Of a DNA stretch of 64,000 nucleotides, positions 1 through 43,384 are shown one piece after another; the stretch's first letter is position 1, and the number at the start of each line of letters is the position of its first letter. The notes beneath the pieces are model-generated. The model did no database searches and was not told where the DNA came from. It worked only from the letters and a program-made list of their open reading frames with translations. The stretch is from sequence record MH494197.1; one strand, given 5' to 3'. The position numbers were made by a program, and so were the translations under genes.

Positions 1-271
1 TGAGATAGTTTGCAAGTACTTTCTACAAATACTTTTAAAATAGTTTTCAGTACTCAATACTCATATAATAGATACACTTATGCACCCTGTGGGCTAGTGA
101 GCTATCTCTCAATGAATATATAATAGCAAAATGGCTGACCGAGTCAACCACTTTTTCATTTATTTTAGCTTTTAGAATCGCCGCCTTTCGCGTCATGCCT
201 TGCTTGATGTATTCTGTACTTTCGCTTTACGTGCATTCGCTTTATTTGCTTTCGTAAACGCCGAACAACTT

Positions 272-529
272 TTATAGTTTAAACCTGTTGGATTCATTTA
301 AATCACCATAAAGAATAGATAGGTTACTAACAACGCCGCGATCAATGCACCGACCGAACTGTAATAAGCTAATGATCTCATTTTTAGCCTGAAAATAATG
401 TTTAATTTGAGCGGCGGTCAGTGCACAATTACGCAGGAAGTTTTCTGTATAACTTTTGCGAGTACTGAAAGAGAATTGACCTTTGCTGCTGCCGATAGTA
501 ACATCAAACCGAGCGTTGTATTGTTTCAT
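272..529 (-). CDS. Hypothetical early protein (MKQYNARFDV..., ~85 aa)
   Basis: The ATG at 529 lies just downstream of cassette 549-610. The ORF-track start at 580 runs through the promoter hairpin. Confidence 0.7.
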   Translation of the reverse strand: MKQYNARFDVTIGSSKGQFSFSTRKSYTENFLRNCALTAAQIKHYFQAKNEIISLLQFGRCIDRGVVSNLSILYGDLNESNRFKL

Positions 530-1691
530 TTTGTTTCTCCTGTTATTGGGGAGAATCATTTCTCCCTTCATGTAAAACATTATACAGTACTAAAACTAAT
601 TGCAAGTACTATTTTTAGATTTACGCAAACTTTCTACCATCTCAGGAGTAAGGTCTGCGGGTAGGAAACTACTTCATCAACGAAACGTAAAGGAATACCC
701 CAGCGAAAGGTGAACGTGCTTTCTTAGTATTACTCTTTTTGATGCTTTCATTTCATATTCTTAATTAGTGGGGAGAATCATTTCTCCCTTCATGTAAAAC
801 ATTATACGCGTTTAAAACTAATTGCAAGTACTATTTGAAAGTAAATGCTCATACGCTACATTAACTACGTTTTCAATAACCGACTGTACAGAAAGATCCC
901 CACTTCCGGCTATAGTAGAAATCGCTTACAGTAGTGTCATCGTATGCAAATACTTTACCGTGACTGCATCAATCACATACATATTAACCTTTAAGATGTC
1001 GATCTTATCCTGTACAGTAAGCATATTAATTAACCTTTTAAGTACTGACTTAAGTAATCTTGTTGATCTTCGGTGATTGCAGCCATCTTCCCTAGTACTG
1101 GATTAATGATATAATCCCTGTAACGTCCTGTAACGCATTCTCAGGCGGTTTAACGGCTGGGGTAGCCATAGCCATTGCCGACTTGTTCGACGCTGTAACG
1201 CTCATAAAGGCGGCATTCTTCCGGTGTTAACATAGCATCAATGCGTTTCATTGGTTTAATGATGCTTTCGATCTCATTCAGTACTTGATTAACGTTCATG
1301 GTATAATCCCAATATAAGCGGCCTAAATCGACCGCTAACGATGTTTTGATTAATAGGTGTATGGTTGACGTTCAAACAATGATTGCACGTTGTACGCCCC
1401 GCTTATGGGCTTTGCTGGTAAATCAATTTTATATTGTTCACGCTTAAAGATAATAAAACGGCAATTGTTTTAACATCAAAATTGATTGAACGTTCCGAGT
1501 TTACCATCGTGCACAAATACAAGATAACCGCTCGCTACTTGTTTTGTAGTACTGGTTGCAACCATAGACCGCCGAACATGTGTACCTGCGTCGATTAAAG
1601 TACTGATATTTTTCATTTTACTATCCTCTTAAGTTGATTTAATTTCTTTCCCTATGCAGACACTGTACCAAAGTATCTGCATAAAGTAAAG

Positions 1692-2013
1692 CTAATTAAA
1701 GATCTTTTTACGTTTTACATCCTGTACAGTACAATGCAACGGGATAGACAAATCATTGCACAAACGATAGAGGGAGGTTTCATCAGTATTAAGCCCGTCT
1801 ACTGATTCCTTTAAGAGAGATAACGCCGTTTGTTGGTATGCATCTTCATAGCCATAAGTAAATGATTCAACCGCCAGATCATTCAAGCCGTTATCCAGTT
1901 CGACGCTTACATGACAAGAATGATGTATTGCCATATGAATCAGACCAACGTTTACCGTCAACATTGATTGCACGGATTGCAGCCGAAACGGTGTTAATGA
2001 TAGTTTTAGCCAT
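1692..2013 (-). CDS. Hypothetical early protein (MAKTIINT...KKIFN), one frameshift
   Basis: Promoter TTGACA-17-CATAAT at 2057-2085 and ATG at 2013; joins to ORF 1692-1973. Confidence 0.55.
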
Positions 2014-2338
2014 TTTAGTATTCCTTAAATTAATATGTGTCGTCTTGATAAAATCTATTATGCCAGTACTATCAAACTATGTCAATAGTACTGTGATAAT
2101 ATTTTTACTTACTTTTTGCTTTCTTTATTGCTTCCACCGGTCGGCCCATTCTTTACCCCATACTTGTAAATTATAATGGTACTGGCAAAGTGCAACGCCC
2201 CGCTTTAAACCAGTAATAGATTTTTACCACATTGACAAGTTTTCATTTTAGTTTCCTTGTAGTGGGAGAACCATTTTCCCCTTGATGTAATGTATTATAC
2301 TTTATTCGATTTACTTTGCAAGTACTTTTTAATTTAAT

Positions 2339-2551
2339 TCATCCGTAAAGGATACGCTCAACGCCCAAATCAGTTAAACTAATCGACGGCACTTGATAGG
2401 TTTCAATGTATGCTACACTTGCCCACTGACCGAACTCATTAACGGCCGTATTCATTGCATTTTGCAATTCCACACCTTCCTTGTTGGTAATGACTGCAAC
2501 TACTTGTTCGTTGCCAGTAGTACCAGATACGCGAGTAATGATAATAGCCAT
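2339..2551 (-). CDS. Hypothetical early protein (70 aa)
   Basis: Intact ORF directly behind promoter 2574-2612. Confidence 0.75.
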   Translation of the reverse strand: MAIIITRVSGTTGNEQVVAVITNKEGVELQNAMNTAVNEFGQWASVAYIETYQVPSISLTDLGVERILYG

Positions 2552-2987
2552 TTTTTAATTCCTATTCAGTAGTTGATGTATGTATTATGCCAGTACTTAA
2601 AACTATTGTCAAACTATTTTTAAAGTTTATCAATGATTGATGCCGTTTCATTGATAGTCTTGCCGTGTTTTGCACACGCGATAACTGCTTTAAATTCCTT
2701 TGATGACCAATCTTTCTTACTGCATACTGACATTACTTGTAAAGTAAAACAATCCAGTTCATAAGTATTCATCTTTATATCCTCAGTTAGTTAAGGTGTC
2801 TGCCTTGATGTAATTAATTATACGCTAATCTCTTAATCGTGCAAGTACTTTTATTACTTTTTGCAAAATACTTTAAACGCTCTCAATCGCATTACAACGA
2901 CCTTAACGCCACCAGCTAGGCAATGCATCAGATAATCAGTTTAAAGCGTTAGAATCGTTTCTAGGCGGTGCTGGTGGCGTAAACGAT

Positions 2988-3015
2988 AAAAAAAGCCCAC
3001 CGTTTAAGGTGGGCT
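2988..3015 (-). terminator. Rho-independent terminator
   Basis: Minus strand AGCCCACC-TTAAAC-GGTGGGCT followed by a T7 tract, just after the stop at 3028. Confidence 0.85.
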
Positions 3016-3027
3016 AGTGATTCAGTT

Positions 3028-3494
3028 TTATGCTTCAACTTTGCGATGAGCTTCGATCCATTCCTCGCGAGTCATACCACTGGAGTTAATCGCGTCCAGT
3101 ACTACCGCAATGCAGTTACCACGCACCGGAATCAGATATTCTTCCCGTTGTACTACCGCTACGCGTTCCTGAATCCATTTTTGGCTTTTACTTCTGGCTT
3201 GTCTTCCCATACTTAACCGCCGTGGCTTTTGTGCCATCTCTGTAACTACTTCCAGATCCAACTACTGCCGCCTGAATACTTTCGATTGTTGCTTGTAGTT
3301 CTGCTTCACGGGCCGCCTTTGCCGCTTCAATTTCTGCCGCTTTATTTGCTTGTAGTTCTTTCGCAGTACTGTAAGCGATGTTAAAATTATTGCGTACCGC
3401 TTTCATGGTATCGTTATCCAGTTCAGCCGGATCTCAGCCGCGACGTTAGTTTCATTTGCACCAGTGCTTTGATGAATGATTTTACATTAGCCAT
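3028..3494 (-). CDS. H-NS/StpA-like protein (~155 aa, frameshifted in this sequence)
   Basis: Re-joined frames give MANVKSFIKALGANETNVAAEIRAELDNDTMKAVRNNF...AREAELQATIESIQAA-LDLEVV...EEYLIPVRGNCIAVVLDAINSSGMTREEWI. By eye this aligns with the H-NS coiled-coil (KLQQYREMLIADGIDPNEL) and C-terminal domain ([32 protein letters not shown]). It has its own promoter (3604-3646) and terminator. Confidence 0.55.
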
Positions 3495-3979
3495 TTTATA
3501 AATCCTCAATTAAAGTTTAGTTTACGTTTATTAGTGTATCAAAGTTTTCTGACGTGTCCAGTTTTTCGTTCGACTTACTGGCGGTCTACTTAGTGCTCCC
3601 CGTCTTGATGTAATACATTCTACGCCTTTTTGCGGTAATGTCAACTACTTTCTTAAAACTATTTTCAAAGTATCTCAGTACTACGATACTACAAAACAAA
3701 AAGCCCACCCGTGGGCTGTATTAATCAGTAAGTAAAATATTAAACACTTTACCATTTAACGTTATTGGTGCACTGCTACCGTGCTCAAGATCCGTTAGTA
3801 TACCTGCAATCGCTTTATCATTGGCGACCTTTCCAGTGTCCAACAGTACGACAGTACTGATAAGATTAACGCTCGTTTCAATATCATAATGCACGGCGTT
3901 AAGGAGTTGTGTATACTGCTTTCGTTAAGTAAAACTATTCGTGCTGTCATGATGTACCCGTAGTATCTATCAACGGCAA

Positions 3980-4267
3980 TTAATAACGCCGGAATGCGTT
4001 ACTTTCAGTATCCATAACAGTGACCGAACCGCGTTTAGTACTTGCATCGTAATAAATTGTCGTGCTACCTTTTTCGTCTTCTTCATGGAACGGCCCGTTT
4101 TTAAATGCTTCTGGCTGGATCTCTAAATCCTTTAAAACAATCTCGCCAGTACTTTCATTGGTCATCGCTACAGTGCACTGAATGAATTTTTCACTACTTA
4201 CATCTAACGACGCATTAACAGCGAAAGAGGAAACAGATAAAGCCGTGGCGATGATTGCAATTTTCAT
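3980..4267 (-). CDS. Small secreted/periplasmic protein
   Basis: Signal peptide MKIAIIATALSVSSFAVNA; sits behind cassette 4286-4343. Confidence 0.75.
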   Translation of the reverse strand: MKIAIIATALSVSSFAVNASLDVSSEKFIQCTVAMTNESTGEIVLKDLEIQPEAFKNGPFHEEDEKGSTTIYYDASTKRGSVTVMDTESNAFRRY

Positions 4268-4677
4268 TTGATTATCCTTAGTTACGGGAACCGCTCTTGC
4301 GATGTAAAATATTATACAGTACTAAAAACTATTATCAAGTACTTTATGATTTTTATAAAACATTTCAGCAGTGATATTTTACCCGTTGGCTGTACTTTAT
4401 CCAGAATTTTTGATGTCCGGCCGTCCAAATGAATATGATCCGTAAACCGTAAACCAGTAGTTACCCTCAGTGTTTACATGTACAGCATAATAGGGAACGC
4501 CCGCGATTCATCACTAGTAAAGTGTGCTACCGTTCCGTTACATTCGCAGACGTTGATTTGATTTGTTCAAGCATTTTATTATTCCTTAGTTACCGTGGGA
4601 ACTGCTCCTATGCAAAACATTATACGCGTTTAAAACTAATTGCAAGTATTTTAATAAAAGTATTTGAAAAATAGTTG

Positions 4678-4706
4678 TTGACAAGTGCATCCAGTACTGG
4701 CATAAT
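4678..4706 (+). promoter_or_regulatory. Plus-strand sigma70 promoter with no downstream ORF
   Basis: TTGACA-17-CATAAT followed by TACTACATCAAG, the same start motif as the minus-strand cassettes. Confidence 0.75.
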
Positions 4707-5443
4707 TACTACATCAAGACGAAACAGTCACTAACCCACCGGGTGCATAGATCCGTCTATTAAATGATTCAGTACTGAAAAGTAACGGGAGTTATTATCT
4801 CCCCGTTGTTATTTTGTGGTATAAACAGAAGTCGCCTTTATTTGCTACGCCGCCAGTGTAACGCGAGGAATAGTCACCCGACTTCTGCTATTACCAGTGT
4901 ATCATCATTCAATTCGCGCAAACGGCTGGATCTTGTACGCCGATTTTGTCGGCATGTTCCCGCATAGATTTAACCAGTGCTTCCAGTTGGGAAAGAGTAG
5001 TGATATTAGCCATTGTATTTTCTCATTACCGTGGAGAACCATTTCTCCCTTTGATGTAAAACATTATACAGTACTGAAAACTAATTGCAAGTACTTTTTA
5101 ATATTGTTTGTCGTCGTCTTCCTCGATGAATTGACCGACGAAATGATCTACTTTCGCTTTGAGGCTTTTATAATCTTCTTCTACTTCCTTTAAACGTTCC
5201 GTAGTATTCCAGTGCCTCAACATATGCGGCCTCAGCCGTTTTCTCACGCATAGCTAAATTCATTCCACGCGTTTCATCAAATAGCCAAAACCATCGGTGC
5301 ATTCACTGATAGACAATGATTTGTTTAACACATTGTACTTTATTACTTTACTCATTAGATAACCTCAGTAAAGGCGGGAACTATTACCCGCCTCGATGTA
5401 AAGTATTATACGCTTTTAAACTTAGTTTGCAAGTACTTTTAAA

Positions 5444-6034
5444 TTAATATTCGATTGATTCTACTACGCCATCAATAACATTGAATTGATACTCGTTTCA
5501 ATCAGTGCCGTAATGTTTTCCAGTAGTGAATTGATCCTCATATGCATTCTCTAAATCACGGTACAACTTGCGGGACAATTCACGAATAGTGTCAGTGAGT
5601 AGTTCCTCAAGCTCATTAACTAACGTTTTTGTTTTGCGGTTAAATCCAGTGTAAGCCGATTCAATGTACCCGCTTACAGTATTCTTGAGTAGTGGGAGTG
5701 CGAACGCTTTACACTCATCGCCAAACCATCTTCATTCAGCAAGTGACGGATTGAGCGATTAGTTAATGCTTTACCTTGCGTAAAACTTCACTGCGTCAAC
5801 GTGGTCAGTACTGATTGATGCACCGTCCCCGGGACCAAAAGCCACTGAATCGTAAATCAGCGTCATTAATGCCATATTCCGGTAGTACTGTTTCAGTATT
5901 CATTTCACTTTCAGAAAAATAATCATCGTTTAAGTTTTTTCACGTTCCCGAACCAGTTCGATAGCTGACGTTTGTTGTTCTGCGTTCAATTCAGAAAAAT
6001 CCATAACGAAAGTAGTAGTAGTGATAGTTTTCAT
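5444..6034 (-). CDS. Hypothetical protein (~195 aa, contains FSGFWSRGDGAS), frameshifted
   Basis: Starts MKTITTTTFVMDFSELNAEQQ behind the promoter at ~6054-6090 and ends VVESIEY*. Not in the ORF track because of indels. Confidence 0.55.
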
Positions 6035-6241
6035 TTTGTAACCCTCATTCAGTAGTTGATGTAAGTATTATACGCTTTAAAAACGTCAAACTATTTTATC
6101 AGGGAGTTTTGTGCCTATTCCTCGGCTACTTAACGGAAGTTACTTATTTGTTCCCCGTCCTGATGTAAAACATTATACGCCTTTAAACATAGTTTGCAAG
6201 TACTTTTAAAAATAGTTTTCAGTACTGAATATTAAAAAGTA

Positions 6242-6401
6242 TTGACAGCATTATCAGTACTAATATAATTCCCATGACAACAGCTAACCCACGGTGCAAT
6301 TGTAACTGTAATAAACTTTTTCTAGATACACTTCCGCACCCTATGGGCTACGGCTTATCTGCCAATGAATACATTATGCCAGTACTGACAAAATAAGTCA
6401 A
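6242..6401. promoter_or_regulatory. Convergent promoter pair enclosing ~100 bp of non-coding DNA
   Basis: Plus TTGACA(6242)-16-TATAAT(6264); minus TTGACT(6401)-17-CATAAT(6373). Confidence 0.7.
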
Positions 6402-6750
6402 TACCGGCAATTGTAAAGATTTGTAAACTGCTTATACTGCAATCGCGTCCGTGCTATAATAATAATAAGTGCTATGGTGTGACTTACCTTTTATTTCAGT
6501 ACTGAATGAATCCGAACGATTTGCATATGATGTTAATTTAAAGTACTTTGATTTGTTGATACGTTACACCACAGATCCGCGTAAGTAGTTTTATTAGTGG
6601 TAGTATCTTTACGGTTTTAACTTCAGTCATATACATATTAGTCATTTTTATTACTCCGAGTTATAGGGGAACTATTCCCGCTCTCGATGTAAAACATTAT
6701 ACGCTTTTAAACTTAGTTTGCAAGTACTTTTATTCAAGTACTGCAATCTT

Positions 6751-6975
6751 TTAGTACGGTACACGGTCACGCGGTTGCTTTCGGTCGAGCTTTATTTCTA
6801 CCACTCGACGCGATACACTATCAGGACTTTTCAACGCCGCTAACCAGTACTGTAATGATCTGGCTGTACTACGCTTTACAATGGCCCAACGTTTACCACG
6901 TTCCGATTGTACGCCCATATCTTTAAACGTTGCCCGTCCGGCGTGCTGCGATCCGAGCTTGTTCACGCGTCGCAA
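6751..6975 (-). CDS. Small basic hypothetical protein
   Basis: Arg/Lys-rich ORF; the true start is probably slightly upstream (indel). Confidence 0.55.
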   Translation of the reverse strand: MRRVNKLGSQHAGRATFKDMGVQSERGKRWAIVKRSTARSLQYWLAALKSPDSVSRRVVEIKLDRKQPRDRVPY

Positions 6976-7829
6976 AATACTTAATATTCATGTTGTTCTT
7001 ATCGTTGGTGTATGAATAAACACTATTATAAAGTACTATCATCGTGCAATAGTACTTTAAATCTATTCTATTACATTCCAACCATTGCAGCACGGATCGA
7101 TAGTGCTATATTTGAATCCGTCCGGTGTTTTTCTTGTCCAGTCTGTTCTAAAAAATAACATCATATGACGGGCCGCATCATTGCGATTAGTGCTATCGTT
7201 AATAAAGTCCCAACTGGTATAATGATTCATCGTTATTAATCCAAAGGCTTACATTCCAATGAGTTTTGTTTTTGTGACCTAAGAACATTTTGATTTAGCC
7301 ATTTTTAATCTTATATAGTGGGGAACTATTTCACCCTGATGTAAAACATTATACGCTTTTAAACTTAGTTTGCAACTTTATTAAACTTATTTGTAATTTT
7401 GCACTGTCAGCCCATACTGTGAAACGATGCATATTATCCCATGCATCTTGTTTTAAATTTAAACTGTGCAATTCCTCAGTAGTTGCTATCCCCATTGGCT
7501 TACTACACACCGCGAAATTTTTCTCCATGTACTGATAAACCATCGTTAAATCATTTGAGATCATTACATGGATCATTGAATCAGCTATGAAGTAGCGTAT
7601 TGTTCACGCACGGCAACGGTTCCCGATAAGCTGTAAATGTGAATTTTACAGTTTCAGCCGGAAGACCTTTCATTTCACGGAAGTTAACCGTGTTAAGCAT
7701 GATTTTATTGATTTGAGTCGCCATCGTTTTAATCTCTTAATGTAGCGGGAAGTGTTCCTGCCTCGATGTAAAACATTATACGCTTTTATCAGTATGCAAG
7801 TACTTTCTACAAATACTTTTAAAATAGTT

Positions 7830-8700
7830 TTCTCTATATAGGGAACTATTATTCAGTACTGCAACCATCCGTGGGAACTATCTTTCTATAGTAGTACTAT
7901 TATTCAGTACTGAATCAATCCACCAAATCATCCTGATACCCGTAAAACGGCCTCAGACGCATTCTAACGCATTAATACACCTAAGCTATACATTTGCACC
8001 ATTCCAATCTTGGCTGGGCCGTTTAAACGCGTTAAATTATTTTCAATTATTTTGTTTTAGCTATTGACTCAGTACTAAAAAGCGTATAATTACACATAGA
8101 CGCGAGAAAGGAAACCAGAGGGTGCGGAATTACGCCCAAAATTCAAGATATAAAAAAAGGATACACCGCACCCTAGCAGGTTAACGCACTTTCTAGTACT
8201 GAAATATAGTAACATAGTCCGCTGATAGCAAGCAATTAAAACTTTTTCATCCGGTATTGCTTTATTTTTCCAGTACTGTATAATAGTTCCATCGTCGAGA
8301 AAGACTCAGCCCACCGTATAGTTACGCCCAAAATTCAGTACTGAAAATTTTAAAAATATCCGTCCGTGCGCGTTGTTCCCCCAGTTTATAAGATAATGAT
8401 TCCAGACTCCAGAACGGTTCATCCCACGCGGTAGGGGAACTATTGGAAAACAAAATAAAATTTTGATTTAGCCGTCTATACTTCCAGACGTGTAACCATC
8501 TAGCCGTTTAGCTGTCCAAACGTCAGCCATCCAGCCATCCAGAAATCTAGCCGTTTAGCCGTCCAGATGGATAGCCATTTCCAGACTTCTGAGGGCTAGA
8601 CATATCTACGTCCAAAATCCATCCGTGGTAACTACGCCCAAAATCCGTCAGTACTATACCATAGATCATCTTTGGAGTATTCAGTACTGCCATCAGCCCC
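7830..8700. repeat. Non-coding repeat cluster (candidate origin or terminal-repeat boundary)
   Basis: Four (T/C)TACG(C/T)CCAAAAT copies (8130, 8322, 8606, 8632), eight YAGCYRTY units at 8469-8580, GGGAACTAT repeats, plus-strand promoters at ~8064 and ~8257, and no ORF. Confidence 0.65.
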
Positions 8701-9816
8701 TCACATGTTACCCTAGGAGGATGAAGATCACCGCGGTACTGAATACTGTTAGAGGGAATCCACCAGCTTGGTGGTATAATCGTTTAGATTAAAATCAGTA
8801 CTGACACCATTCTGTTAATATCAGTACTGTTATTGATTTTCATATGAGGTTCAAAAAGATGTACCCACCACAGGAGGAACTATCTTTTCTGTACTGTCTC
8901 ACAGGAGGTAGAGTAAATGAATCGTTCGCAACTCATCTCTATGTAGAACATTATACAGTACTGAATCATAATGTCAATAGCTTTCTTTCATTATTCAGTA
9001 CTGATATTCTTGAGAACTACCCGACTACAAACATCATTATATCCCACAAATCATAAACGTCCCAACGTAAATTTCAACTTTCGAAGATCCAACTTTATTT
9101 CATAGGTACTCCAAAATTTTAGGATCGAGATTTAGGATGGAGTACTAACCAACTTTTGCTGAGCTCTGGATATTAAGGTGAAAGTAATAATTCAGTAATT
9201 AATCATTGGTGATTACTTTTGATTACATTTGATGTAATTTGCAAAATGGAAAAGGAGCTTGAAACTAGTACGGCAGACTTCCTCTGCCTACTAGGTGCTG
9301 GTTTCATCTATCGGAGGGAAATGGATTAACCTTAGCAATACGTAACTGAATACGTTCTTGATTAAACGTGCACATTCCTGTACTCTATTACACTCTAGTA
9401 CACTCTAGTACTCAATACTGATCACTACAATGATTATAAATGATTACTTAAATGTTTATATATGATTACTTATGACTACATATGATTAGGGTTTACTGGG
9501 AGAATCTAGTGATCGCATTTGTCCAGCTGAATTTTAACATATATAACATATGTTAAAGCCTGTCCAATGCTTCTGCGGAGCTTCTGTCTATATGTTGAAT
9601 TACTTCCTATATATAAGCATTAACATATAGTAGTACTGATTATGCTGTACATTCTCTTTAATATTATAAGGGTCTATAGCAATCTCGGTACATCTGTTAA
9701 ATGCATATCTATTAAATGCCAGTACTATTATAGATCTAATCCATGCTTGGTCAGTCGGTGGTAGTTTACTTATATAGTACTCTTTATAGTTTTTATGTTC
9801 TGCATAGTATACCTTA

Positions 9817-9996
9817 TTATTTCAAAGTACCATATAGTACTCTTAATAGGAAGTAGTACGTATTAGAGATATCATTACTAGTTAAAACAATCTTTGTACA
9901 CATATTAAATTCGTATTGAGTCATTGCTGGGATTAAATTGTTAACCCATGCTTGTTCGTTTTCTTTGAGTTTACTTATATAGAAGTCTTTATACAT
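9817..9996 (-). CDS. KEFY-family protein (MYKDFYISKLKENEQAW..., 59 aa)
   Basis: Hand-translated intact ORF, below the ORF-track length cutoff. Confidence 0.75.
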   Translation of the reverse strand: MYKDFYISKLKENEQAWVNNLIPAMTQYEFNMCTKIVLTSNDISNTYYFLLRVLYGTLK

Positions 9997-10228
9997 AGTA
10001 TTATCTCTATTAATATGATAGTACTAGTGTTAGTACTGAGCACAATTGTTCTTTATAGTTCTTAGGGTATATAGAATCTTTTATGCACTCATTGAAGTGC
10101 CATAGGTATAATCTTGGGTCGCATTCTTTATATATTTTACGCCATAGGTATATATCTTGGGTCGCATTCTTTATATATTTTTTACGGGGACGAATGTTAG
10201 TTTTCTTATATAGAAGTCTTTGTGTTCT

Positions 10229-10438
10229 TTATTCATATAGGAATAGTATACCTATGATGCCTGAGTACATGTTAGTACTGTTATTATTGGCGTTTGCGTT
10301 TAAAGTCATTTGAATACAATTGTTGTAGCATAATCTGCCGAAATATGTATCAGTACTTAAAGGTGCAGTAGTCCTTAGAAACATTTGTTCTGTGGGGCTG
10401 AGGTGTTTGGAGTAGAATTCTTTATGTTCATTATTCAT
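10229..10438 (-). CDS. KEFY-family protein
   Basis: MNNEHKEFYSKHL...YNNCIQ...YSGIIGILFLYE. Confidence 0.85.
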   Translation of the reverse strand: MNNEHKEFYSKHLSPTEQMFLRTTAPLSTDTYFGRLCYNNCIQMTLNANANNNSTNMYSGIIGILFLYE

Positions 10439-10634
10439 AGATATATAGGAGTGCCATTATGTTGGAGTATAGTTTATTGTTGTCATTTTCTTGCAGTGCT
10501 TGTATAGTACTACGTATACAGTTATTATAGCATATTTTTGTGAAATTATTTTGTAATTTCATTTTCATTGGTTTTGCTTTATAGAATGATTGTTTTGTGG
10601 GACTAAGATGATTTATGTAGAACTCTTTATACAT
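10431..10634 (-). CDS. KEFY-family protein
   Basis: MYKEFYINHL...YNNCIR...YSNIMALLYIYE. Confidence 0.85.
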   Translation of the reverse strand: MYKEFYINHLSPTKQSFYKAKPMKMKLQNNFTKICYNNCIRSTIQALQENDNNKLYSNIMALLYIYE

Positions 10635-10651
10635 GTTAGTACCTTAGTGCT

Positions 10652-10837
10652 TTAGTGTCTGTATATAAGTAATAGTAAGAATACGTACTGCACCTGTTCA
10701 TCTTTAGTATTGAGTACTGTACGTATTGCGTCATTAAACAAAAATATAGTACTTGGGTCATTAGAATTTAAGGGGTTTACGGGGACGGCGTGTTTGTAGT
10801 TCCCTTTAACAAATTGTATATAGTATTCTCTATGCAT
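10652..10837 (-). CDS. KEFY-family protein
   Basis: MHREYYIQF...FNDAIR...YVFLLLLIYRH. Confidence 0.8.
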   Translation of the reverse strand: MHREYYIQFVKGNYKHAVPVNPLNSNDPSTIFLFNDAIRTVLNTKDEQVQYVFLLLLIYRH

Positions 10838-10838
10838 A

Positions 10839-11027
10839 TCAGTACCTATATATTAGGGCGAGAATGTAGTACAGTTCATATGGAATGTAATTTGGGGTGA
10901 TAGCACACTGTGTATGGTAAATGAATTGTTGGGTATTTTTCTTATCCTTGATATCTATTGGGTTTAGTGGTATAAGCATTTGGGAGTTTAGTTCCAGATG
11001 GTTTAAGTAGAATTCTTTGTTATTCAT
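10839..11027 (-). CDS. KEFY-family protein
   Basis: MNNKEFYLNHL...YYILALIYRY. Confidence 0.8.
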   Translation of the reverse strand: MNNKEFYLNHLELNSQMLIPLNPIDIKDKKNTQQFIYHTQCAITPNYIPYELYYILALIYRY

Positions 11028-11226
11028 AGAAGAATATTAGTCCCATTACGCCTGAGTACTGAATATTTTTGTTATTGTTTTCTAAAGCTTCTAGAGTAAT
11101 ACGTATACAATTATTAAAGCAATCTCTGGCGTGTGGTGTATCTAAACGTAAAGGTGATACACTCCTTAGAAACATTTGTTCTGATGCACTGAGGTGTTTG
11201 GTGTAGAATTCTTTCTGTTCGTTCAT
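11020..11226 (-). CDS. KEFY-family protein (close paralog of 10229-10438)
   Basis: MNEQKEFYTKHLSASEQMFLR...FNNCIR...YSGVMGLIFFYE. Confidence 0.85.
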   Translation of the reverse strand: MNEQKEFYTKHLSASEQMFLRSVSPLRLDTPHARDCFNNCIRITLEALENNNKNIQYSGVMGLIFFYE

Positions 11227-11236
11227 ATTGGCCTCT

Positions 11237-11425
11237 TTAGTACACGAAAGCTAGGTACAGTGTATGATACAGTACTCGATGATAGCTATCAAAATCTAGT
11301 ATACATGCTTTAGTGCACATAGTAAAGTACACTTTATCGTTTTGAGCATTGATACCGCGAGGTTTATCTAATAGATTAGTACTGAGGTACATTGGGAAAT
11401 ATTTTGTGTAGTATTCTTTATGCAT
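11237..11425 (-). CDS. KEFY-family protein
   Basis: The family start MHKEYYTKYF lies at 11425, inside ORF 11237-11470. Confidence 0.75.
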   Translation of the reverse strand: MHKEYYTKYFPMYLSTNLLDKPRGINAQNDKVYFTMCTKACILDFDSYHRVLYHTLYLAFVY

Positions 11426-11807
11426 ATTAGTACCTGAATATAAGTAGGATAGTGTTATATAATTGGTCATAGCTACTACTATTTTCTATACTGCGTTCTA
11501 TGCAATTATTGAATCCCAGTACTGCCAAATCGTTATCCGGGGGACTTTATATCTGGCGTAGTGTTCAAATATACTGGGAGAAATTGTGTGTAGTATTCTT
11601 TGTGCATATTAGTACCTATATATTAGTAAAAGGATGTGATACAGTACTCGATTATAGTCTTCAATATATATCGAGGATTTAGTGCACTGAATGAAGTAGT
11701 CTTTTTCGTAGTTTTTTCTATACCCAATGGTTCTGTTGGTAGAAGGTGTTGGAGATACATTGGGAGTTTCTCTATGTAGTATTCTTTGTGGTTATTCATA
11801 TTATGTG

Positions 11808-11981
11808 TTATTTCGTGAAAACAAGGGTTAGTACTGCATAGTACAAGTCATACGTATCTTTAGGGTTAATAGCACCTTTAATACATTCTTTCATTACTTC
11901 ATTATAGATAATTTTAGTACTGAATGTATTGGATGTTACTATATCGGAATTAAGGTACGAGAGGTAGAATTCTTTATACAT
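11808..11981 (-). CDS. KEFY-family protein
   Basis: The family start MYKEFYLSYL lies at 11981, inside ORF 11808-12044. Confidence 0.75.
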   Translation of the reverse strand: MYKEFYLSYLNSDIVTSNTFSTKIIYNEVMKECIKGAINPKDTYDLYYAVLTLVFTK

Positions 11982-12080
11982 AGTTTGAAATATACGTAAT
12001 GAGGTGATGAAATTTCTTATCAGTACTGATAAGTTCCTGTACATGTTTTGTTAGTTTGTACGCGTTTTATAGAGTCCGGA

Positions 12081-12458
12081 TTATCGATTACAGTACTGTA
12101 CATGAATAGATCTTCTTCTGATAATTCTTTGCCGGTAATTCTTTGAGGAATTGCAGTACTGTATCAGTTTCGTTAGTACGTTGCTTTTGGAAGAAGTGCA
12201 TGTTATCGTGTATTTTTCTGAACCCATGCAGTACATATCTCCGATTTGGAATTGTGCAGTACTGATATCATGGGTGCTATTACAATTCCCGAAGAAGTAT
12301 ACATTCCCGAAAGATAGAATTATAGTGCACGGGATATTATCCATGTGTATATAGATAGATGCATTCTTTAGTGCTTTTGTGCTGGTATTAGTACTCAATA
12401 CTTTTAAATCAGTATTATAGATATTAATAAAAGCAAGAGCTATATTATTTTTCTTCAA
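12081..12458 (-). CDS. Hypothetical protein (125 aa) interrupting the KEFY array
   Basis: Long ORF on the operon strand with no family motif. Confidence 0.6.
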   Translation of the reverse strand: MKKNNIALAFINIYNTDLKVLSTNTSTKALKNASIYIHMDNIPCTIILSFGNVYFFGNCNSTHDISTAQFQIGDMYCMGSEKYTITCTSSKSNVLTKLIQYCNSSKNYRQRIIRRRSIHVQYCNR

Positions 12459-13207
12459 GTACGATTTGAGGTTCTTAGATACGAGAACATTTCTGGATTT
12501 TTCTTTTTATTTCGTTTCTTTAGTATATTCGGGTGATACGTATAAGATGATGTAACTGATTCTGCTTGAATACTGTTGAGGTATTTAAAGTGCTTAAGGT
12601 ATTGTTTGCTGTGTGCATTAAGTTTCATTTGGTTTCCTTTATACAGATGCGAGTGCGAGGATTTCCCTGAAGGGATTATCTTTTGTTAGTGCGTGATGAA
12701 TGCAGCTATTGAGATTAATATTTTTAGTACTGTTAGTTGCCGTTGTAGTACTTCACGAAGGTGTCGTACATGAAACGGTCTTTAATGCTTATGTGTTCTA
12801 TATAGTATTCTTGCATATTATTCCTTACATAGAGATGAGTTTCAGTACATCAATATACATATAACGTTCAGATGACTGTACACGGGTAGTGATAATCTCA
12901 ATCGATATATTTTAATTCCATGTGCAGATGATTGATGGTGCTGAATAAATGAGTTGTGCATACTTTGTTCTATGTGGTTTAGTTTATTGAAGTAGTACTC
13001 AAAAGTGTTCATGTCTACCTTAGATTGAGATTAGTTTAAGTACTTCTCTGTATGTGTACTTTTCGTTTTGTGCTTCTACTGTACATGATAGTAGGTATCG
13101 TTTTTTATCTCTTTTGTTCCCGACTGTGTAGTACCTTTGGAATTTATTATAGTTGTATCTATCTTTGTGCTGGAGTTTATAGATATAGAATTCTTGCATA
13201 GAGTACC

Positions 13208-13393
13208 TTAGATTGCTATCAGTTTCAGTACTTCAATATATGTGCGGTACTCTGCTTTAATTAAATTTGTACACACTGTAAGGGAATTTCTTTGTATAAG
13301 TTTATTGCCGCTTTTATACGCATTTCTCCACACATAGAGATGAGATCTTTCAGGCATAGATAGTTTATTTGTATAGTACTCAAATGTATTCAT
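13208..13393 (-). CDS. KEFY-related protein (MNTFEYY subtype)
   Basis: Paralog of MNTFEYYFNKL at ~12825-13012; both end ...Y(I)(D/E)VLKLI. Confidence 0.75.
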   Translation of the reverse strand: MNTFEYYTNKLSMPERSHLYVWRNAYKSGNKLIQRNSLTVCTNLIKAEYRTYIEVLKLIAI

Positions 13394-13995
13394 ATATTAC
13401 CTCAAATAGAGATTAGTTTAAGTACTTCTCTGTATGTGTACTTTTCGTTTTGTGCATCTCTTGTGCTTGTATATAGGTATCCTCGACGATATTTGTTGCT
13501 CCCGTTCTTGTAGTTGAATTCGAACTTATTGTAGATGAATCTATCGCCGCTGTAATTTACTTAAGTACAATTCAATGCTCATAGTATTCTCTTTACATAT
13601 CAATAAGTTTCAGTACTGCTCTGTACGTGTACTTAGTTGTTAGTGCTTCTTTATAGCAATACAGAAGTAATGTTGTTTGTCTCTTATACTACCGCGTTTG
13701 TAGTACCATACATTGGAGTTGTGGGTGTACTTGTCCCTGTCGGATAGATTTTGGTAATAGTATAATATATGATTCATGGTAATGTAATTAGCCTTATTAT
13801 GTTAAAGTACTCGGTCCCCGTACACCTTGTAGAATATTATCAACTACATTTTCTTGGTGCAGGATTAATACATTCGGTGCGGTTCTTTTAAGGTTTTTAA
13901 AGTACTGTATTCTTGTTTAAGGATGAACTGTACATCTTTAGGGAGAATATCTAAGTAGTACTGGTGTATGTTCATAGTTTTCATATAGTACTCTT

Positions 13996-14181
13996 TTAGA
14001 ACTTAAAGATGAGGTTCATGATAGATAAGTACTTAGTTTCAGGAAATTGATGTTCTATTGCATAACGTGTCTCCAGTCTGAAGTCAAATTTATAAAAGGG
14101 ACTATTCATATCCATAGGTTCATTGGGAAATGAATCTCTGTATTGTTTGTGCAGCTTACTACAGTAGAATTCTTTATACAT
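13996..14181 (-). CDS. KEFY-family protein
   Basis: MYKEFYCSKL...YLSIMNLIFKF. Confidence 0.8.
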   Translation of the reverse strand: MYKEFYCSKLHKQYRDSFPNEPMDMNSPFYKFDFRLETRYAIEHQFPETKYLSIMNLIFKF

Positions 14182-14182
14182 A

Positions 14183-14395
14183 TTAGTGCTCGATTAAAAG
14201 GGTTAGGATGTAATAGTATTGCATACTTTCTACCCCTTGTACAGCATTTCTTATTTTATTATTCCTGTACGAGTTCAAGAGTTTAGGACAATGTTTGAAG
14301 TTTATATAATTATTTTGTGTATACAGTAGGCTTTCTCGTAGACCTTTTGTTGGTAGTGCATCGATGTAGTACTGTTCAATGTTCATAGTGTTCAT
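14183..14395 (-). CDS. KEFY-related protein
   Basis: MNIEQYYIDAL...YYYILTLLIEH. Confidence 0.75.
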   Translation of the reverse strand: MNTMNIEQYYIDALPTKGLRESLLYTQNNYINFKHCPKLLNSYRNNKIRNAVQGVESMQYYYILTLLIEH

Positions 14396-14719
14396 AGAGC
14401 TACCAGTACTAAGATTTTTGATAATTGTTTGTTTCTATCCCGCAGATGTTGTTGTGTAAAATGCTCACTACAAGGGTATCAAGTGCATTGTTCAGCATAA
14501 GGTTACATCCAGTACTGTTATATTTTTTAGCTCAATTAGCCACGAACAATCCGCGAGAAATTTCCCGTACTCTAGTTCATTTAGCGTATTAATGTAGTAC
14601 TTAAGTGCATTTGTCATGTACAGTTCTCCTTATATTCCTTCTATAGTACATCAGTACTGAAAGGTTGTCAAGGGTTTTCTTTTTGGGGTAAATATGATAT
14701 AATGAATAAAGGAGGAAAT

Positions 14720-15866
14720 ATGTTACCTTTTGTAAGAATGGTTAAGTACGGGAATATTGCACCAGTACCGAAAAAATAAAGAAAGTTATAGCAGGATATG
14801 ATAATTTATATGTACTATATGGTGATGGTTCGCTATATGGTTGTGGAATCAATAACTATCAACAGTTAAATATTGATGGAACTGCTACACAAAATAATTG
14901 GGTACTAATTACCAATGGTGTTAGTAATGCATGGGCTGGTGGATACAATATTTTATATTTGAAAGAAGATAAATTTATAATGCACGGAACTAATGTCTCA
15001 TTAGGTTTAGGAAATACTACAATTCCATTAGGTGGAGTAGATGTAACTTCTTCATTCCCAGATATCTCTAATATTAAAATGATATCCATTGGTTTTGATT
15101 CAATGCACTATGTTAGTGCTGATGGTACAACTGTATATGGAAGAGGTATGAACACAAATGGTTCTGTTGGTTCAGGTAGTACTTACTCACAGAGTACTTT
15201 CACTTCAGTACTGAATAATGGAACTAATCAGGTTATTGATATATTTGGTAACGTTAATAATACAGTGCTTCTAACATCGAATGGTGAGCTTCGAGCATGT
15301 GGGACAAGTGCTTATGGTTCTATAGGAAATGAAACTGGTAAGTGGACATCGTTTGGTTTAAAATTATCTGGCACTAAAATAATGGGTGGTAATGGGTATA
15401 GTACGCTTGCATATACAAATTCGGGAATGTACCACTCAGGGTGGCAGTTAAATGGGGAACTAGGAAATGGTTTAGATACTAACGTACAGGTATATCCATT
15501 TCAATTTAACTCTAAAACGATAGATAGCAAGATAGATAAAATTGCCAAATCATCATCTGGGTCATATGTTAACATGTACTCAACAACAGAAGGAAAGATA
15601 TATACGACAGGTTCGTTTGGTAAAACGGGTCAACTACTGCATTGAATTTGTTCACCAATACATTAACACTTATAAATTACAATCCAGATACCGCCTCGTT
15701 GTATACGTGCACAAACTTCAGTGTTGTGTATGATGGTAATGAAACTATTGCTGTAAGTGGTAGTCCTACATATGTACCGAGGGCGTTGCCGCTAATAGAT
15801 GGACTACAATTCCATTACCCAAGTAATACTATGCCAGTACTTGATGCTGGCTTTTCTTTTGATTAA
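14720..15866 (+). CDS. Leader-tagged RCC1/BLIP-II-like beta-propeller protein #1 (frameshifted)
   Basis: Hybrid leader MLPFVRMVKYGN; the body is closely similar to #13; LYGCGxN..QL and GWQLNGELGNG repeats. Confidence 0.8.
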
Positions 15867-15893
15867 ATATAGTATAATGAATAAGGAGGAATT

Positions 15894-17017
15894 ATGTTAC
15901 CTTTTGTTAGAATGTTTGATTATGGGAATATAATCGAAGTTAATAATATAAAGAAAAGTGTTGTTAGTTACACTCTTGAAATGTTTCTAATGCAAGATGG
16001 CACTGTATATGCACACGGTGAAGATTCAAACTATAATGCGGGTTTAAGTACACAGTTTGTATCGTTAGGAGCAGTTCAACAAATCACAACTGAAGTTGAT
16101 GACTTATGGTTAGGATCGTTTTCCGTTGTTATTAAAGGTGATAAAATATATGGTTCAGGTTCAACATATGCATTCACGAATTCTAATACTTTCCAACAAG
16201 GATATACTGACTGGGCTGTGTATTTCACTGGTATAGATGTTACCCAAATTAAAAAATGTTATGTGGTTATACAGCATTTATATTAATGAAAGACGGAACA
16301 CTTTATGGAAGAGGATGGAATCGAAGTGGTACATTAGGTTTAGGACATAAAAATTATGTTTCAGCGTGGACTGTACTTGACACTAATGTGGATAATATAT
16401 TTGGCGGTTACCTTGGCGATACATTGTTTAAGATTAAAAACGATGGAACTGTATATGGTTCAGGTTCAAATAACAGCTTTCAAGTTAAAGCAACATCGGG
16501 TGATGCAACCACATTTGTTCCGTTGTTTGATGATATATCTTATGATATAAAATGCAGTTTTGTTTCTGGTGTTGGTTTTGTAATGATAACATCTGATAAT
16601 AAAATATATGCAACTGGAACTACTTTTGCTGGTAGTGGTGCACATAGTAAAGTTTTTGATGTTGGTTTTACTATAGGTGATATGAGTAATATATATCATC
16701 CTGATTCGTTGGACTATTCGACTAGTGTTGTATTTTTAATTAATGCAGATACAAACAAACTAATAGCAACTGGGCATACCCATTTACGGAAGTAGTTCAA
16801 GTTCCTTCCATATTTTACAGCATTTCAAGAATTCAATTTTACATCGTTCAATTCGAATACACGATATAGTGGGTCTTTATACTGGAATACATTTTACGAA
16901 GGTAATAATGTATGGATGAATGGATATAATCCTGAAAATACGGGTGGAAAGAATTTCTCATTGTGTTCAATACCGTTAGATACTATTATTACTAAGCAAA
17001 TTGATTTACCTTTTTGA
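15894..17017 (+). CDS. Leader-tagged RCC1-like protein #2 (frameshifted)
   Basis: MLPFVRMFDYGN; LYGRGWNRSGTLGLG repeat. Confidence 0.8.
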
Positions 17018-17087
17018 ATACTATGCCAGTACTCAAGTACTGGCTTTTATTTTATTAAATATAGTATAATGAATAAAGGAGGGAAAT

Positions 17088-18273
17088 ATGTTACCTTTTG
17101 CAAGAATGGTTAAGTACGGGAATAAACAGCCTATTCCTGAACCAGTTGAGTTCACTGATGTTTTACAGCAACATTATACTAATGCTATGTATCTACATAA
17201 GCCCACGAATACACTATACGGTTATGGTGGTAATAACTTGAGCCAATTAGGTCTAGGGAATCAATCGACAGTTTCTACTTTTACAGTACTGGCAACGCAC
17301 TGTGCAGCCTTTTGGTTAGGCGTTCATGGCTCATTGATGATTGACTTGGATAATAGAATATATTTCACAGGGAATACAGTAGCATTCCCCGATTATGGAG
17401 ATGCAACTCCAGTTAATGGTTATTTTAGAACATGGACTGATGTTACTGCCGCATTTGACAAAATAAATGTACACGCTAATTTAATCAAGAGTGTACATAT
17501 AGGTGAAAGTACTAGAATATTACTACACGATGGAAGAGTAGTTGTTTGTGGTAAAATGCAAATGCCGAATGTGGAACAGGTAACCAAAATCCCATACCAG
17601 TACTAACAGTTGTTACTGGTATGGGTGAAGTTCTCAATTGGCGTGTTCATTACAGGGTACGCACTATCTCAAAACAAATAAAGAAGCATGGTTTTGTGGT
17701 AAGGATAACTTTGGTGAAAGTGGTGCTGGGACTAGCTCATACGTTTTACTAATAAGTTAATACGATCCAACGTCGATTATATAAGTGCTACTTATGATGT
17801 TACGGTGGTTCACTGCCGGTAGGGTGTACTGGAGTGGTAGAAACAATTCTGGACAAGCTGGGAATGGTACTACTTCAACCACAAACCAATTAACTACAGT
17901 TCAGAATTCACAGGTTATAGTGAATATTAGTGATGGTTTCCTGTGTCCTAGTAATATGGGTAACTCAACAATTGGTGCACCTATGGCTCAATACCCATCA
18001 TATGTCAGAGTGCAGGCATCAATACATATGGTCAAGAAGGGACGGAAATACAACAGTAATTACTTCGTGGGGGCGTTTTCTTTAAGTGCGATACAGGGTG
18101 GATATGACAATGTTCTTATGGCATCCAAAGACTGGTCCAGAACAATAATTATAACTAAAGATTATAAATTATATGCATGTGGGGGCTTTAACGGTTCAGG
18201 TGGTAACTTACCGGATGGTACTTCCGTAATTAAAACATTAACATTAATGCCAACGCAGTTATGGCAATCATAG
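17088..18273 (+). CDS. Leader-tagged RCC1-like protein #3 (frameshifted)
   Basis: MLPFARMVKYGN; LYGYGGNNLSQLGLG and YWSGRNNSGQAGNG repeats. Confidence 0.8.
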
Positions 18274-18282
18274 GAGAAAATC

Positions 18283-19404
18283 ATGTTACCTTTTGTTAGA
18301 ATGTTTGATTATGGAAATGAAGCACCTGATCCTAGTTCGGGATTTCGAATAATAAGTACAGGAGACGCATTACTATTAATTACTAAGAGTGGTGATTTGT
18401 GGGTGCGTGGTTATAACCGTTATGGCAAGTTAGGTATAGGTAATAACACCACTACCTATGTACTTGATTGGACGAAGGTTAGAAGTGATGTAAAGTTTGC
18501 GTGTGGTAGTGGATTGGTAACAGTTATCTTTACTAAGGGTAATCGCATATTGTACTGTGGTGACAAATGGTTTGAAACGGGTGGTGTTGGTAGTGCACAG
18601 ATTTTCACATGGACAGATGTTACGCACCAATTTGGGGCAGTAGATTTGAGTACAGTAAGGGATATGAAAATGTCTTATTACACGATTGGATTATTGACTA
18701 CTAATAATCAATTATACGCTAAGGGATATGATAATAACCTATCATTTGGTGGGGTTAGTAATAAGGCGACTGCTGTGTTTATTGCGAATAATGTACAAGA
18801 GTTGTATACGAGTTTAGTTAGTACAATCTACGTTGATACAAGTGGTATATTACATCGTTGTGGCATGAGTGATAACGGTTCGTTGGGTAATAATGTTAAT
18901 TTAACTTCGTATCTAAGTTATTCACAGACTGGTATGACGATTAAGGACATTGGAATGATGACTACGAACACTGGGTTATTATATACTGATTCTAGTGCAC
19001 GCACGAGATATTTTATTGCTGGACAGAACTTGAATAAACAGATGGGTAATGCGGCGGCTGCGAGTGCCATTACGAGTACTTACACAGAGCTTTCTGGTAG
19101 TGTTGATAAGTTTTCTTCTTTATGGGCGAATGATGGGATATTGATGACATTTGCTGTGGGTAAGAACACTAATCAGTTATTTTATGCTGGGATGAATACT
19201 TTTCATGCGAGTGGTGGTGTATCTTCATATGCGGATACATATGAGTTAGTCCCGATGGTGTTTAATGACATACAGGAAGTGTTATGTGCACAGCGTTTAT
19301 CGGTGGTACATGATTCTACGAAGTGGTATTACTGTGGTGATGCTAATTCAATGTATGGTTTACCGGACGTAAGTACTTTTACTGAGTTACCGTTGCCCTT
19401 TTAA
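18283..19404 (+). CDS. Leader-tagged RCC1-like protein #4 (intact, 373 aa)
   Basis: MLPFVRMFDYGN; LWVRGYNRYGKLGIG and LHRCGMSDNGSLG repeats. Confidence 0.9.
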   Translation: MLPFVRMFDYGNEAPDPSSGFRIISTGDALLLITKSGDLWVRGYNRYGKLGIGNNTTTYVLDWTKVRSDVKFACGSGLVTVIFTKGNRILYCGDKWFETGGVGSAQIFTWTDVTHQFGAVDLSTVRDMKMSYYTIGLLTTNNQLYAKGYDNNLSFGGVSNKATAVFIANNVQELYTSLVSTIYVDTSGILHRCGMSDNGSLGNNVNLTSYLSYSQTGMTIKDIGMMTTNTGLLYTDSSARTRYFIAGQNLNKQMGNAAAASAITSTYTELSGSVDKFSSLWANDGILMTFAVGKNTNQLFYAGMNTFHASGGVSSYADTYELVPMVFNDIQEVLCAQRLSVVHDSTKWYYCGDANSMYGLPDVSTFTELPLPF

Positions 19405-19476
19405 TAATAGGTCAGTACTGAAATATGTACTGGTATTTTTGTAAATACTATATAATTTAATTACGGAGATTTTATT

Positions 19477-20653: not shown

Positions 20654-20726
20654 CATTATACCAGTACTGAAATATGTGCTGGTATTTTTTTAAATACATT
20701 ATAATTATTATATGGAGATTTTAGTT

Positions 20727-43309: not shown

Positions 43310-43384
43310 GACAATTCCTCGATTGTGGGGATGAGAAGTTCATCCCTTGATAAACATTATACAGTACTGAATGAGTTTGTCAAC

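Follow-up and report, generated by a model that had tools for sequence, protein, structure and literature searches.

Between positions 549 and 7803 of the 64,000-nucleotide stretch of sequence record MH494197.1 analyzed here (the window), the minus strand carries an array of cassettes, each consisting of a promoter and a stem-loop, that stand in front of small genes. The DNA belongs to Escherichia phage CMSTMSU, one of the Asteriusvirus (RaK2-like) jumbo phages, and its record is flagged UNVERIFIED_ORG; positions 1-8803 equal MH494197.1 from about base 124,001 at 100% identity, and CMSTMSU was the best (99.9%) of the 196 phage records that matched 549-7803.

Alignment to the linear genome of phage vB_Ec-M-J, in which the homologous stretch is annotated within a 21,525-bp direct terminal repeat, places 549-7803 in that third of an Asteriusvirus phage's ~21-kb direct terminal repeat which lies next to the terminus. 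Base 1 of that genome aligns at window position 9292, and the DNA directly before its right-hand repeat copy aligns to the window beyond 9292. The predicted left physical end of the repeat (a point without strand) thus lies at 9292, from where the repeat would extend leftwards past the window start, and the array does carry on for ~11 kb past the left edge of the window. For phage Sharanji a terminal repeat of 20.7 kb was determined by PhageTerm (PMC11895373), and Klebsiella phage Muenster has one of 20 kb. All genes of 549-7803 lie on the minus strand and point inward from the left genome end, and over its whole length the repeat holds about 45-50 small genes, arrayed in this one direction.

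Reading of the strand together with a hexamer scan gave 18 sigma70-type promoters on the minus strand of positions 1-9000, and an independent consensus promoter scan, in agreement on the strong promoters, gave 15 sites with at least 10 of 12 positions matching, 12 of them on the minus strand. The commonest order of elements was AAAAGTAC-TTGCAA, a 16-nucleotide spacer, TATAAT, 5 nucleotides, ACATC(A/G)AG or ACATGAAG, a G-rich hairpin, a linker and ATG, in a standard unit of ~95 nucleotides; most genes have their own unit, and exactly one gene lies behind most promoters. AGTAC abuts the -35 box (TTGCAA or TTGACA), the spacer of 16-17 nucleotides often contains CAGTACTG, which gives the TG of an extended -10 element, and ACATC(A/G)AG forms a conserved initial transcribed sequence downstream of TATAAT. 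The hairpin, of 6-9 bp, starts 10-14 nucleotides past the -10 box, and the linker of ~17 nucleotides between it and the ATG carries the Shine-Dalgarno (SD) sequence. The distance from -10 box to start codon had a median of 51 nucleotides (interquartile range 48-52, four relatives), that from hairpin end to start codon a median of 17 nucleotides, and the intergenic length a median of about 82 nucleotides. In four well-assembled relatives, each locus has 15-17 TTGCAx promoters, and 13-16 of them carry a hairpin of -8 kcal/mol or better within 38 nucleotides of the -10 box, as compared with only 11.6% of random windows.

We built a covariance model (R1) of the segment from the -10 box to the SD sequence from 47 distinct copies in relatives. 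It matched the 64-kb window ten times, always on the minus strand and between 536 and 7780, with no match outside this interval. Searches of whole records gave 23 matches in CMSTMSU (113,091-131,780), 24 in phAPEC6 (325,133-342,693) and 27 in each of the two repeat copies of vB_Ec-M-J (1,699-20,685 and 358,747-377,733), in each genome on a single strand, and none in the unique part (~336 kb) of vB_Ec-M-J. In these three whole genomes, the cassette family was therefore confined to the terminal repeat and to one orientation. Rfam 15 at its gathering threshold and ARAGORN found no known RNA family and no tRNA in the whole window. The near-identical promoters with an ACATC(A/G)AG start that the initial annotation had described were confirmed by the 18 promoters, 10 of which fit the one model, and its hairpins GGGAGAA/TTCTCCC, GGCGGG/CCCGCC and GGGAA/TTCCC were all found as it gave them. 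Its figure of ~14 cassettes was a fair count, made up of 10 clear copies and several promoters that are degraded or have no hairpin. The promoters and cassettes are as follows.

536-610, minus strand: cassette 1, with AGTAC-TTGCAA, AGTACTG in the spacer, TATAAT, ACATGAAG, hairpin 548-566 and SD sequence; family-18 gene at 383-559; R1 match 536-584, 61.6 bits; -10.1 kcal/mol
758-832, minus strand: cassette 2, hairpin as in cassette 1; family-20 gene at 614-740, frameshifted here; R1 match 758-806, 63.8 bits
2252-2326, minus strand: cassette with a GGGGAA/TTCTCC hairpin; family-24 zinc-finger-like gene; R1 match 2252-2299, 44 bits
4275-4343, minus strand: cassette whose G-run stem is shortened in this assembly and intact in the phAPEC6 and WPEC5 orthologues; family-29 secreted protein gene at 4004-4267; R1 match 4275-4316, 32.8 bits
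4590-4650, minus strand: TTGCAA/TATAAT promoter with a degraded hairpin, where orthologues have GGGGGAGCGGTTCCCC; family-30 gene
5019-5095, minus strand: cassette and indel junction, where WPEC5 and Ecwhy_1 have 437 nucleotides more (families 34 and 33), with 46 nucleotides of common homology; R1 match 5019-5068, 59.4 bits
5363-5437, minus strand: cassette with a GGCGGG/CCCGCC hairpin (-16.1 kcal/mol, z -3.3) and indel junction, where relatives have an extra 280-nucleotide gene (a second family-36 copy); R1 match 5363-5410
6140-6204, minus strand: cassette variant with a long-loop hairpin; family-37 gene at 5447-6034 (203 amino acids in relatives); R1 match 6140-6177, 27 bits
6654-6728, minus strand: cassette with a GGGAA/TTCCC hairpin; family-39 gene; R1 match 6654-6701, 46.6 bits
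7308-7380, minus strand: cassette; family-36 (DUF7249) gene at 7102-7291; R1 match 7308-7353, 40.8 bits
7735-7803, minus strand: cassette, the first of the family from the genome end; family-40 gene at 7394-7724; R1 match 7735-7780, 37.1 bits
2057-3649, minus strand: four sigma70 promoters, with -35 boxes at 2085, 2612, 2844 and 3644, none of which has a leader hairpin in this record

Pairing in the leader hairpin

Base pairs were counted in a model-based alignment (A2) of 91 copies (64 distinct rows), with 500 shuffles and slid alignments as controls; a MAFFT alignment of the leaders (A1) was dropped for this purpose, as it set the two stem arms in inconsistent registers. Paired cells made up 91.3% of the alignment's stem, relative to a shuffled mean of 84.6%, cells with both sides changed numbered 44 (shuffled mean 16.8), and the covariation score was 0.287 (shuffled mean 0.191). 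No shuffle of the 500 was as high in any of these three measures, and all slid controls fell below the observed pairing measures. One stem pair switched between G:C (32) and A:U (22), the other pairs showed G:C, A:U, U:A and C:G, and the orthologous cassettes before family 29 differed by a double change from G:C to A:U. In the terminal repeat of Klebsiella phage Muenster the layout AGTAC-TTGACA, CAGTACTG-TATAAT, ACATCAAAG or ACATAGAAA recurred with quite different stems. Among the six inner pairs, 37 G-U and 4 A-C combinations were counted, and this excess of G-U over A-C fits base pairing in the sense strand only, as opposed to a palindrome of duplex DNA. The hairpins thus covary, in agreement with the original description of a varied sequence with kept pairing, and the pairing on the sense strand is under selection, which makes the hairpin an element of the transcribed leader.

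Three rival explanations of the hairpin were weighed, ranked in the order RNA-binding factor, attenuation of the promoter early stem-loop (PeSL) type, and DNA operator, and the counts above bear directly on the last of these. The inverted repeat might act as duplex DNA, as the operator of a dimeric repressor immediately after the promoter, since its position, +8 to +28, is a common one for operators, and the repeated promoters resemble the conserved upstream (CUP) regulon, in which the repeats of IncN plasmids are bound by ArdK (PMC6289460). However, the wobble is strongly strand-asymmetric, the stems carry compensatory substitutions, their sequences are unrelated among copies and genera, and the invariant AGTACT palindromes of the promoters are better operator candidates, so that we regard this explanation as highly improbable.

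The second rival draws on the PeSLs of T4-like phages, which combine strong sigma70 promoters with stem-loops (Arbiol et al. 2010, PMC2839356; Comeau et al. 2014, PMC4122927). In PeSLs the stem-loop is found between the two promoter boxes, on top of them, further upstream or directly ahead of the start site, and it terminates upstream transcription (PMC2839356, PMC4122927). The stem-loops of the array could likewise act as attenuators or terminators of upstream transcription and limit read-through along it: PeSL stem-loops with a G-run followed by a C-run terminate efficiently (PMC2839356), one PeSL subclass has its stem-loop downstream of the -10 box, and true composite terminator-promoters do occur elsewhere in this genome. 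The cassette hairpin, however, starts far enough past the -10 box (10-14 nucleotides) to lie inside the cassette's own transcript. Furthermore, a terminator scan of the minus strand called 2994-3015, 3702-3717 and 128-154 but found no cassette hairpin to be terminator-like and none with a T-run; the first two of these calls are real T-run terminators, at places where termination is evidently wanted. A G+C-rich stem-loop followed by a T-run was thus not present in the cassette hairpins, which without a U tract are not terminators. As far as the sequence can be read, a terminating stem-loop within, over or upstream of the promoter was found in the composite motifs and not in the cassettes, and we consider attenuation very unlikely.

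It is also possible that the leader (ACATC(A/G)AG and the hairpin) is the site of a dedicated RNA-binding factor, whether a repressor, a processing nuclease or an antitermination system like nut/put, in which case all transcripts of the terminal repeat would be jointly switched off, or carried through downstream hairpins. Each promoter is followed, at a fixed distance, by a conserved 8-nucleotide linear element and then by a short hairpin, an arrangement that recalls boxA/boxB, and the loops fall in few classes (ATGA, ATAG, ATGG, ACGG and GCGG). The short intergenic distances leave hardly any room for terminators, so that read-through transcripts must cross many hairpins. Against such a factor, the stems and loops vary from copy to copy, and those of the Klebsiella relatives bear no relation to them, which argues against a single sequence-specific reader, and no candidate protein was identified; RegB (PF10715) and RegA (PF01818) had no match in two Asteriusvirus genomes, and the control genomes gave no match either. 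We hold an RNA-binding factor to be an unlikely explanation.

Gene gain and loss at the cassettes

Four relatives were collinear in gene order, with single genes gained or lost. Between families 37 and 32, WPEC5 and Ecwhy_1 carry families 36-35-34-33, phAPEC6 carries 36-35, SD-2_S15 carries 36, and the window (CMSTMSU) carries 35. Among the pairwise insertions and deletions (indels) of at least 100 nucleotides in five relatives, 33 of 39 had their junction inside a cassette, where cassettes make up 17-20% of the DNA. Many of these junctions were ambiguous over 17-108 nucleotides of cassette sequence common to both sides, the trace that direct repeats are expected to leave when they recombine. 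Replacement was seen as well, in that before family 39 an orthologous gene is preceded by an entirely different cassette subtype.

A search with a 96-nucleotide cassette as query gave 9-28 copies in each Asteriusvirus record. Weaker copies lay close to the beginning of jumbo-phage records from Klebsiella, Erwinia, Serratia and Yersinia, and copies were also found in Vequintavirinae phages of ~145-150 kb. In one of the latter, Escherichia phage A7_1 (~145 kb, rV5-like), the locus 5200-10650 contained three R1 cassettes, two of which flank a single gene and scored 63.6 and 55.6 bits. This phage shares 12 gene families with the Asteriusvirus terminal repeat, at 35-91% amino-acid identity and in a different order, and the combination of shared families and shared cassettes indicates exchange of early genes between phage subfamilies.

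Comparison of the deposited genomes thus shows that genes have been gained, lost and replaced between phages at the cassettes, with homology at the junctions. The initial annotation had proposed that genes are shuffled between cassettes, and it had named invariant gene content between them among relatives, and a lack of covariation in the hairpins, as findings that would speak against it. Relatives differ by whole genes there, the same genes are reordered in A7_1 and the hairpins covary, so that neither of these findings was made.

Gene products, AGTACT sites and other features of the window

The genes of four relatives encode 28-203 amino acids (median 76). In the window their reading frames are often broken: alignment to WPEC5 and phAPEC6 required 21-23 gap openings per kb, as compared with 1.3-3.4 for the other relatives among themselves. 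Of about 130 gaps of one or two bases, 118-120 were bases absent from this record alone, at roughly 7-16 times the rate between other relatives, and about 60% adjoined the same base. Over window positions 1-9000, CMSTMSU had about 14 single-base deletions per kb relative to its relatives, mostly in homopolymers. When the small proteins of the relatives were mapped on the window, at least 10 of about 25 genes were split between frames, and several hairpin G-runs and promoter spacers were likewise shortened in the CMSTMSU assembly. Another genetic code, or programmed frameshifting, was rejected as the cause of the broken frames, as the breaks are single-base deletions, mostly homopolymeric and specific to this record. 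The one or two tiny genes first assigned to each cassette are therefore real small genes, whose frames of 30-50 codons are in part an assembly artefact of small deletions and frameshifts. The CMSTMSU record is heavily frameshifted and unsuitable for defining gene content.

This part of the repeat contains 29 gene families, and a scan of the ten longest against Pfam and PHROGs returned only DUF7249, DUF1033 and PHROGs of unknown function. The family-27 gene (3031-3495), which has its own promoter and terminator, encodes a 160-amino-acid early protein, with no H-NS match in Pfam at an E-value of 0.01. In the Muenster repeat, the depositors' annotation names a toxin (YafQ-like), an antitoxin (YeeU-like), a protein kinase and a putative DNA-binding protein, the last with an HHpred hit.

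The most surprising side observation was an excess of the palindrome AGTACT, which is the commonest hexamer of the window (239 occurrences vs 21.7 expected) and is 19-23 times in excess in the terminal-repeat loci of CMSTMSU, WPEC5, phAPEC6 and Klebsiella phage Muenster. Within stop-free frames of at least 150 codons it occurred at 2.97 per kb (0.34 expected), mostly in the phase AGT ACT, and in the promoters it occupies two fixed sites about 20 nucleotides apart, one abutting the -35 box and the other giving the TG of the extended -10 element. The enrichment was absent from the Vequintavirinae locus (A7_1), and a literature search of incomplete coverage found no paper on it. One may speculate that the cassette is a self-contained and transferable "expression socket" with two layers of control, a reader of AGTACT in the DNA and a reader of the leader RNA, which together would form an undescribed regulon that times the repeat. 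In such a socket the paired AGTACT sites at -41/-36 and -20/-15, two helical turns apart, would be bound by a putative phage DNA-binding factor that would also recognize the hundreds of AGTACT sites across the genome, and the leader RNA (linear element and hairpin) would be read by a putative RNA-binding factor. We regard this as a doubtful proposal; if it were true, coliphage lineages that are unrelated (Asteriusvirus, Alcyoneusvirus and Vequintavirinae) could trade early genes that are ready to be expressed.

A second repeated motif of the minus strand consists of a hairpin, GGGTTGAC...GTCAGCCC, whose T-run overlaps the -35 box TTGACT of the next promoter. The -35 boxes of these composite terminator-promoters lie at 147, 38683, 40651, 41367, 45818, 48070, 48848 and 52424. 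In addition, short non-coding units with their own sigma70 promoters and an element like CCCAYAGGGTGC were seen at 4678-4810, 6242-6401, 60-147 and 8050-8330, with no Rfam match; the promoters at 6242 and 6401 converge across about 100 nucleotides, and the ~1.5 kb from the predicted genome end (9292) to the first gene consists of short non-coding promoter units. The two outlying cassette copies reported earlier at 43328-43383 and 58043-58134 are real. They have the layout of the array but unrelated stems, and R1 matches neither. The further features of the window are as follows.

383-7724, minus strand: about 20 small early genes, 28-203 amino acids in relatives, at least 10 of them frameshifted in this assembly
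2994-3015, minus strand: intrinsic terminator after the family-27 gene, from the terminator scan
3702-3717, minus strand: second intrinsic terminator, from the same scan
120-154, minus strand: composite terminator-promoter, with a hairpin and T-run over the -35 box TTGACT, in the classical PeSL layout
43316-43388, minus strand: outlying copy with TTGACA, AGTACTG-TATAAT, ATCAAG, a 7-bp GGGATGA/TCATCCC hairpin (43383 to 43328), SD sequence and ATG; stem unrelated
58036-58139, minus strand: outlying copy with a 13-bp stem and a 27-nucleotide loop (58134 to 58043), -24.3 kcal/mol, z -4.7
9292, no strand: predicted left physical end of the terminal repeat

Relation to known systems and proposed mechanism

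PeSLs are concentrated in hyperplastic regions, where indel junctions coincide with them (PMC2839356, PMC4122927). The array resembles them in its repeated strong early promoters of the sigma70 type, which have an A/T-rich upstream region (AAAAGTAC, upstream of the -35 box) and are joined to a stem-loop of G and C runs, and in its position immediately before small genes that have no known function, within hyperplastic regions (23-27 copies, all in the terminal repeat), where indels and replacements between close relatives end in the motifs. The classical form, a stem-loop with a T-run over the -35 box, is also present in this genome. The cassettes differ from PeSLs in that their hairpin comes after the transcription start, in the 5' leader, lacks a T-run, covaries at the RNA level and is not the terminator half of a composite; moreover, they are confined to a direct terminal repeat, in one orientation, and their hosts are RaK2-like jumbo phages and not Tevenvirinae. 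In the IncN plasmid pKM101, the CUP repeats of the leading region overlie promoters and serve as sites for the repressor ArdK (Delver and Belogurov 1997, via PMC6289460). The likeness there lies in repeated promoter-bearing sequences before several genes in the DNA that enters first, suggesting a single regulon. Unlike the cassettes, CUPs are defined by ArdK binding, to which the AGTACT palindromes and not the hairpin would be the analogous candidate operator, and CUPs are not known to have an RNA leader hairpin. The comparison with PeSL and CUP elements made in the initial annotation holds; the promoters, the genomic role and the evidence at the junctions are shared with PeSLs.

Promoter clusters of the RpoD type before short genes have been described in the RaK2-like phages CBB (PMC5259590) and PA5oct (PMC7318152), and some such clusters lie in the terminal repeat (PMC5259590, PMC7318152). 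In our search of the literature on phAPEC6, Asteriusvirus, RaK2 and rV5, which was incomplete in its coverage, neither the promoter-hairpin unit nor its part in gene flux was found to be described. We regard the array as a PeSL-like system with a new placement of the hairpin.

The arrangement also has a parallel in the pre-early (first-step-transfer) genes of phage T5, which are small host-takeover genes with strong host-type promoters in a long terminal repeat that enters first. Both systems have small genes with such promoters in a long direct terminal repeat, but the T5 repeat is about 10 kb and has far fewer genes, and we know of no repeated promoter-hairpin cassette in T5. In bacterial and phage mRNAs, such as that with the ompA leader, 5' stem-loops are stabilizing and act as obstacles to scanning by RNase E. 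The cassette hairpin is comparable in being stable, near the 5' end and upstream of a ribosome-binding site that it does not sequester, and differs in having about 5-8 unpaired nucleotides ahead of it.

We consider it probable that the cassette array is a PeSL-like shuffling system with its hairpin in the leader, in a repeat that is transcribed inward by the sigma70 RNA polymerase of the host. In this model, host RNA polymerase would start at the A of ACATC, 6-8 nucleotides past the -10 box, so that the hairpin would begin about 5-8 nucleotides into the transcript, and the genes of the repeat would be the first to be expressed after DNA entry. The cassettes may serve as portable homology for recombination, as the PeSLs of T4-like phages do, by which unrelated early genes could be plugged in, dropped or exchanged, even across phage subfamilies. 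The hairpin would then be a common structured leader for every inserted gene that might insulate expression from gene context and slow 5'-end-dependent attack by RNase E. Transcription start, early timing and any effect on mRNA half-lives are predicted here from the DNA; the proposals of the initial annotation that the hairpin stabilizes the mRNA, that the small genes serve host takeover or anti-defence and that the dense promoters sequester RNA polymerase are likewise conjectural.

Several observations weigh against this model. The z-scores of single hairpins were modest (-1.3 to -3.3), the alignment used for covariation was fitted to the model structure, and its copies are related to one another. 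The 39 pairwise indels are not independent and represent about 11 distinct events, and junction position alone is weak evidence, because whole-gene indels must end in intergenic DNA, most of which is cassette in this array; the homology at the junctions carries more weight. Within Asteriusvirus, gene order was conserved, so that presence and absence were seen and not reordering. Finally, Emory, Bouvet and Belasco reportedly found in 1992 that a protective 5' stem-loop must sit within a few nucleotides of the 5' end, and the unpaired nucleotides that precede the hairpin weaken the classical model of stabilization, although a structure that blocks scanning by RNase E would still fit.

If the model is true, gene shuffling by promoter cassettes is not peculiar to T4-like phages, and the early, variable genes of the RaK2-like phages, which are relevant to therapy, can be located with R1 as a marker. 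The cassette would also be a compact natural promoter-leader part for the expression of small genes. For the RaK2-like phages themselves, the same logic would organize the whole first-entering terminal repeat and would move early genes across subfamilies.

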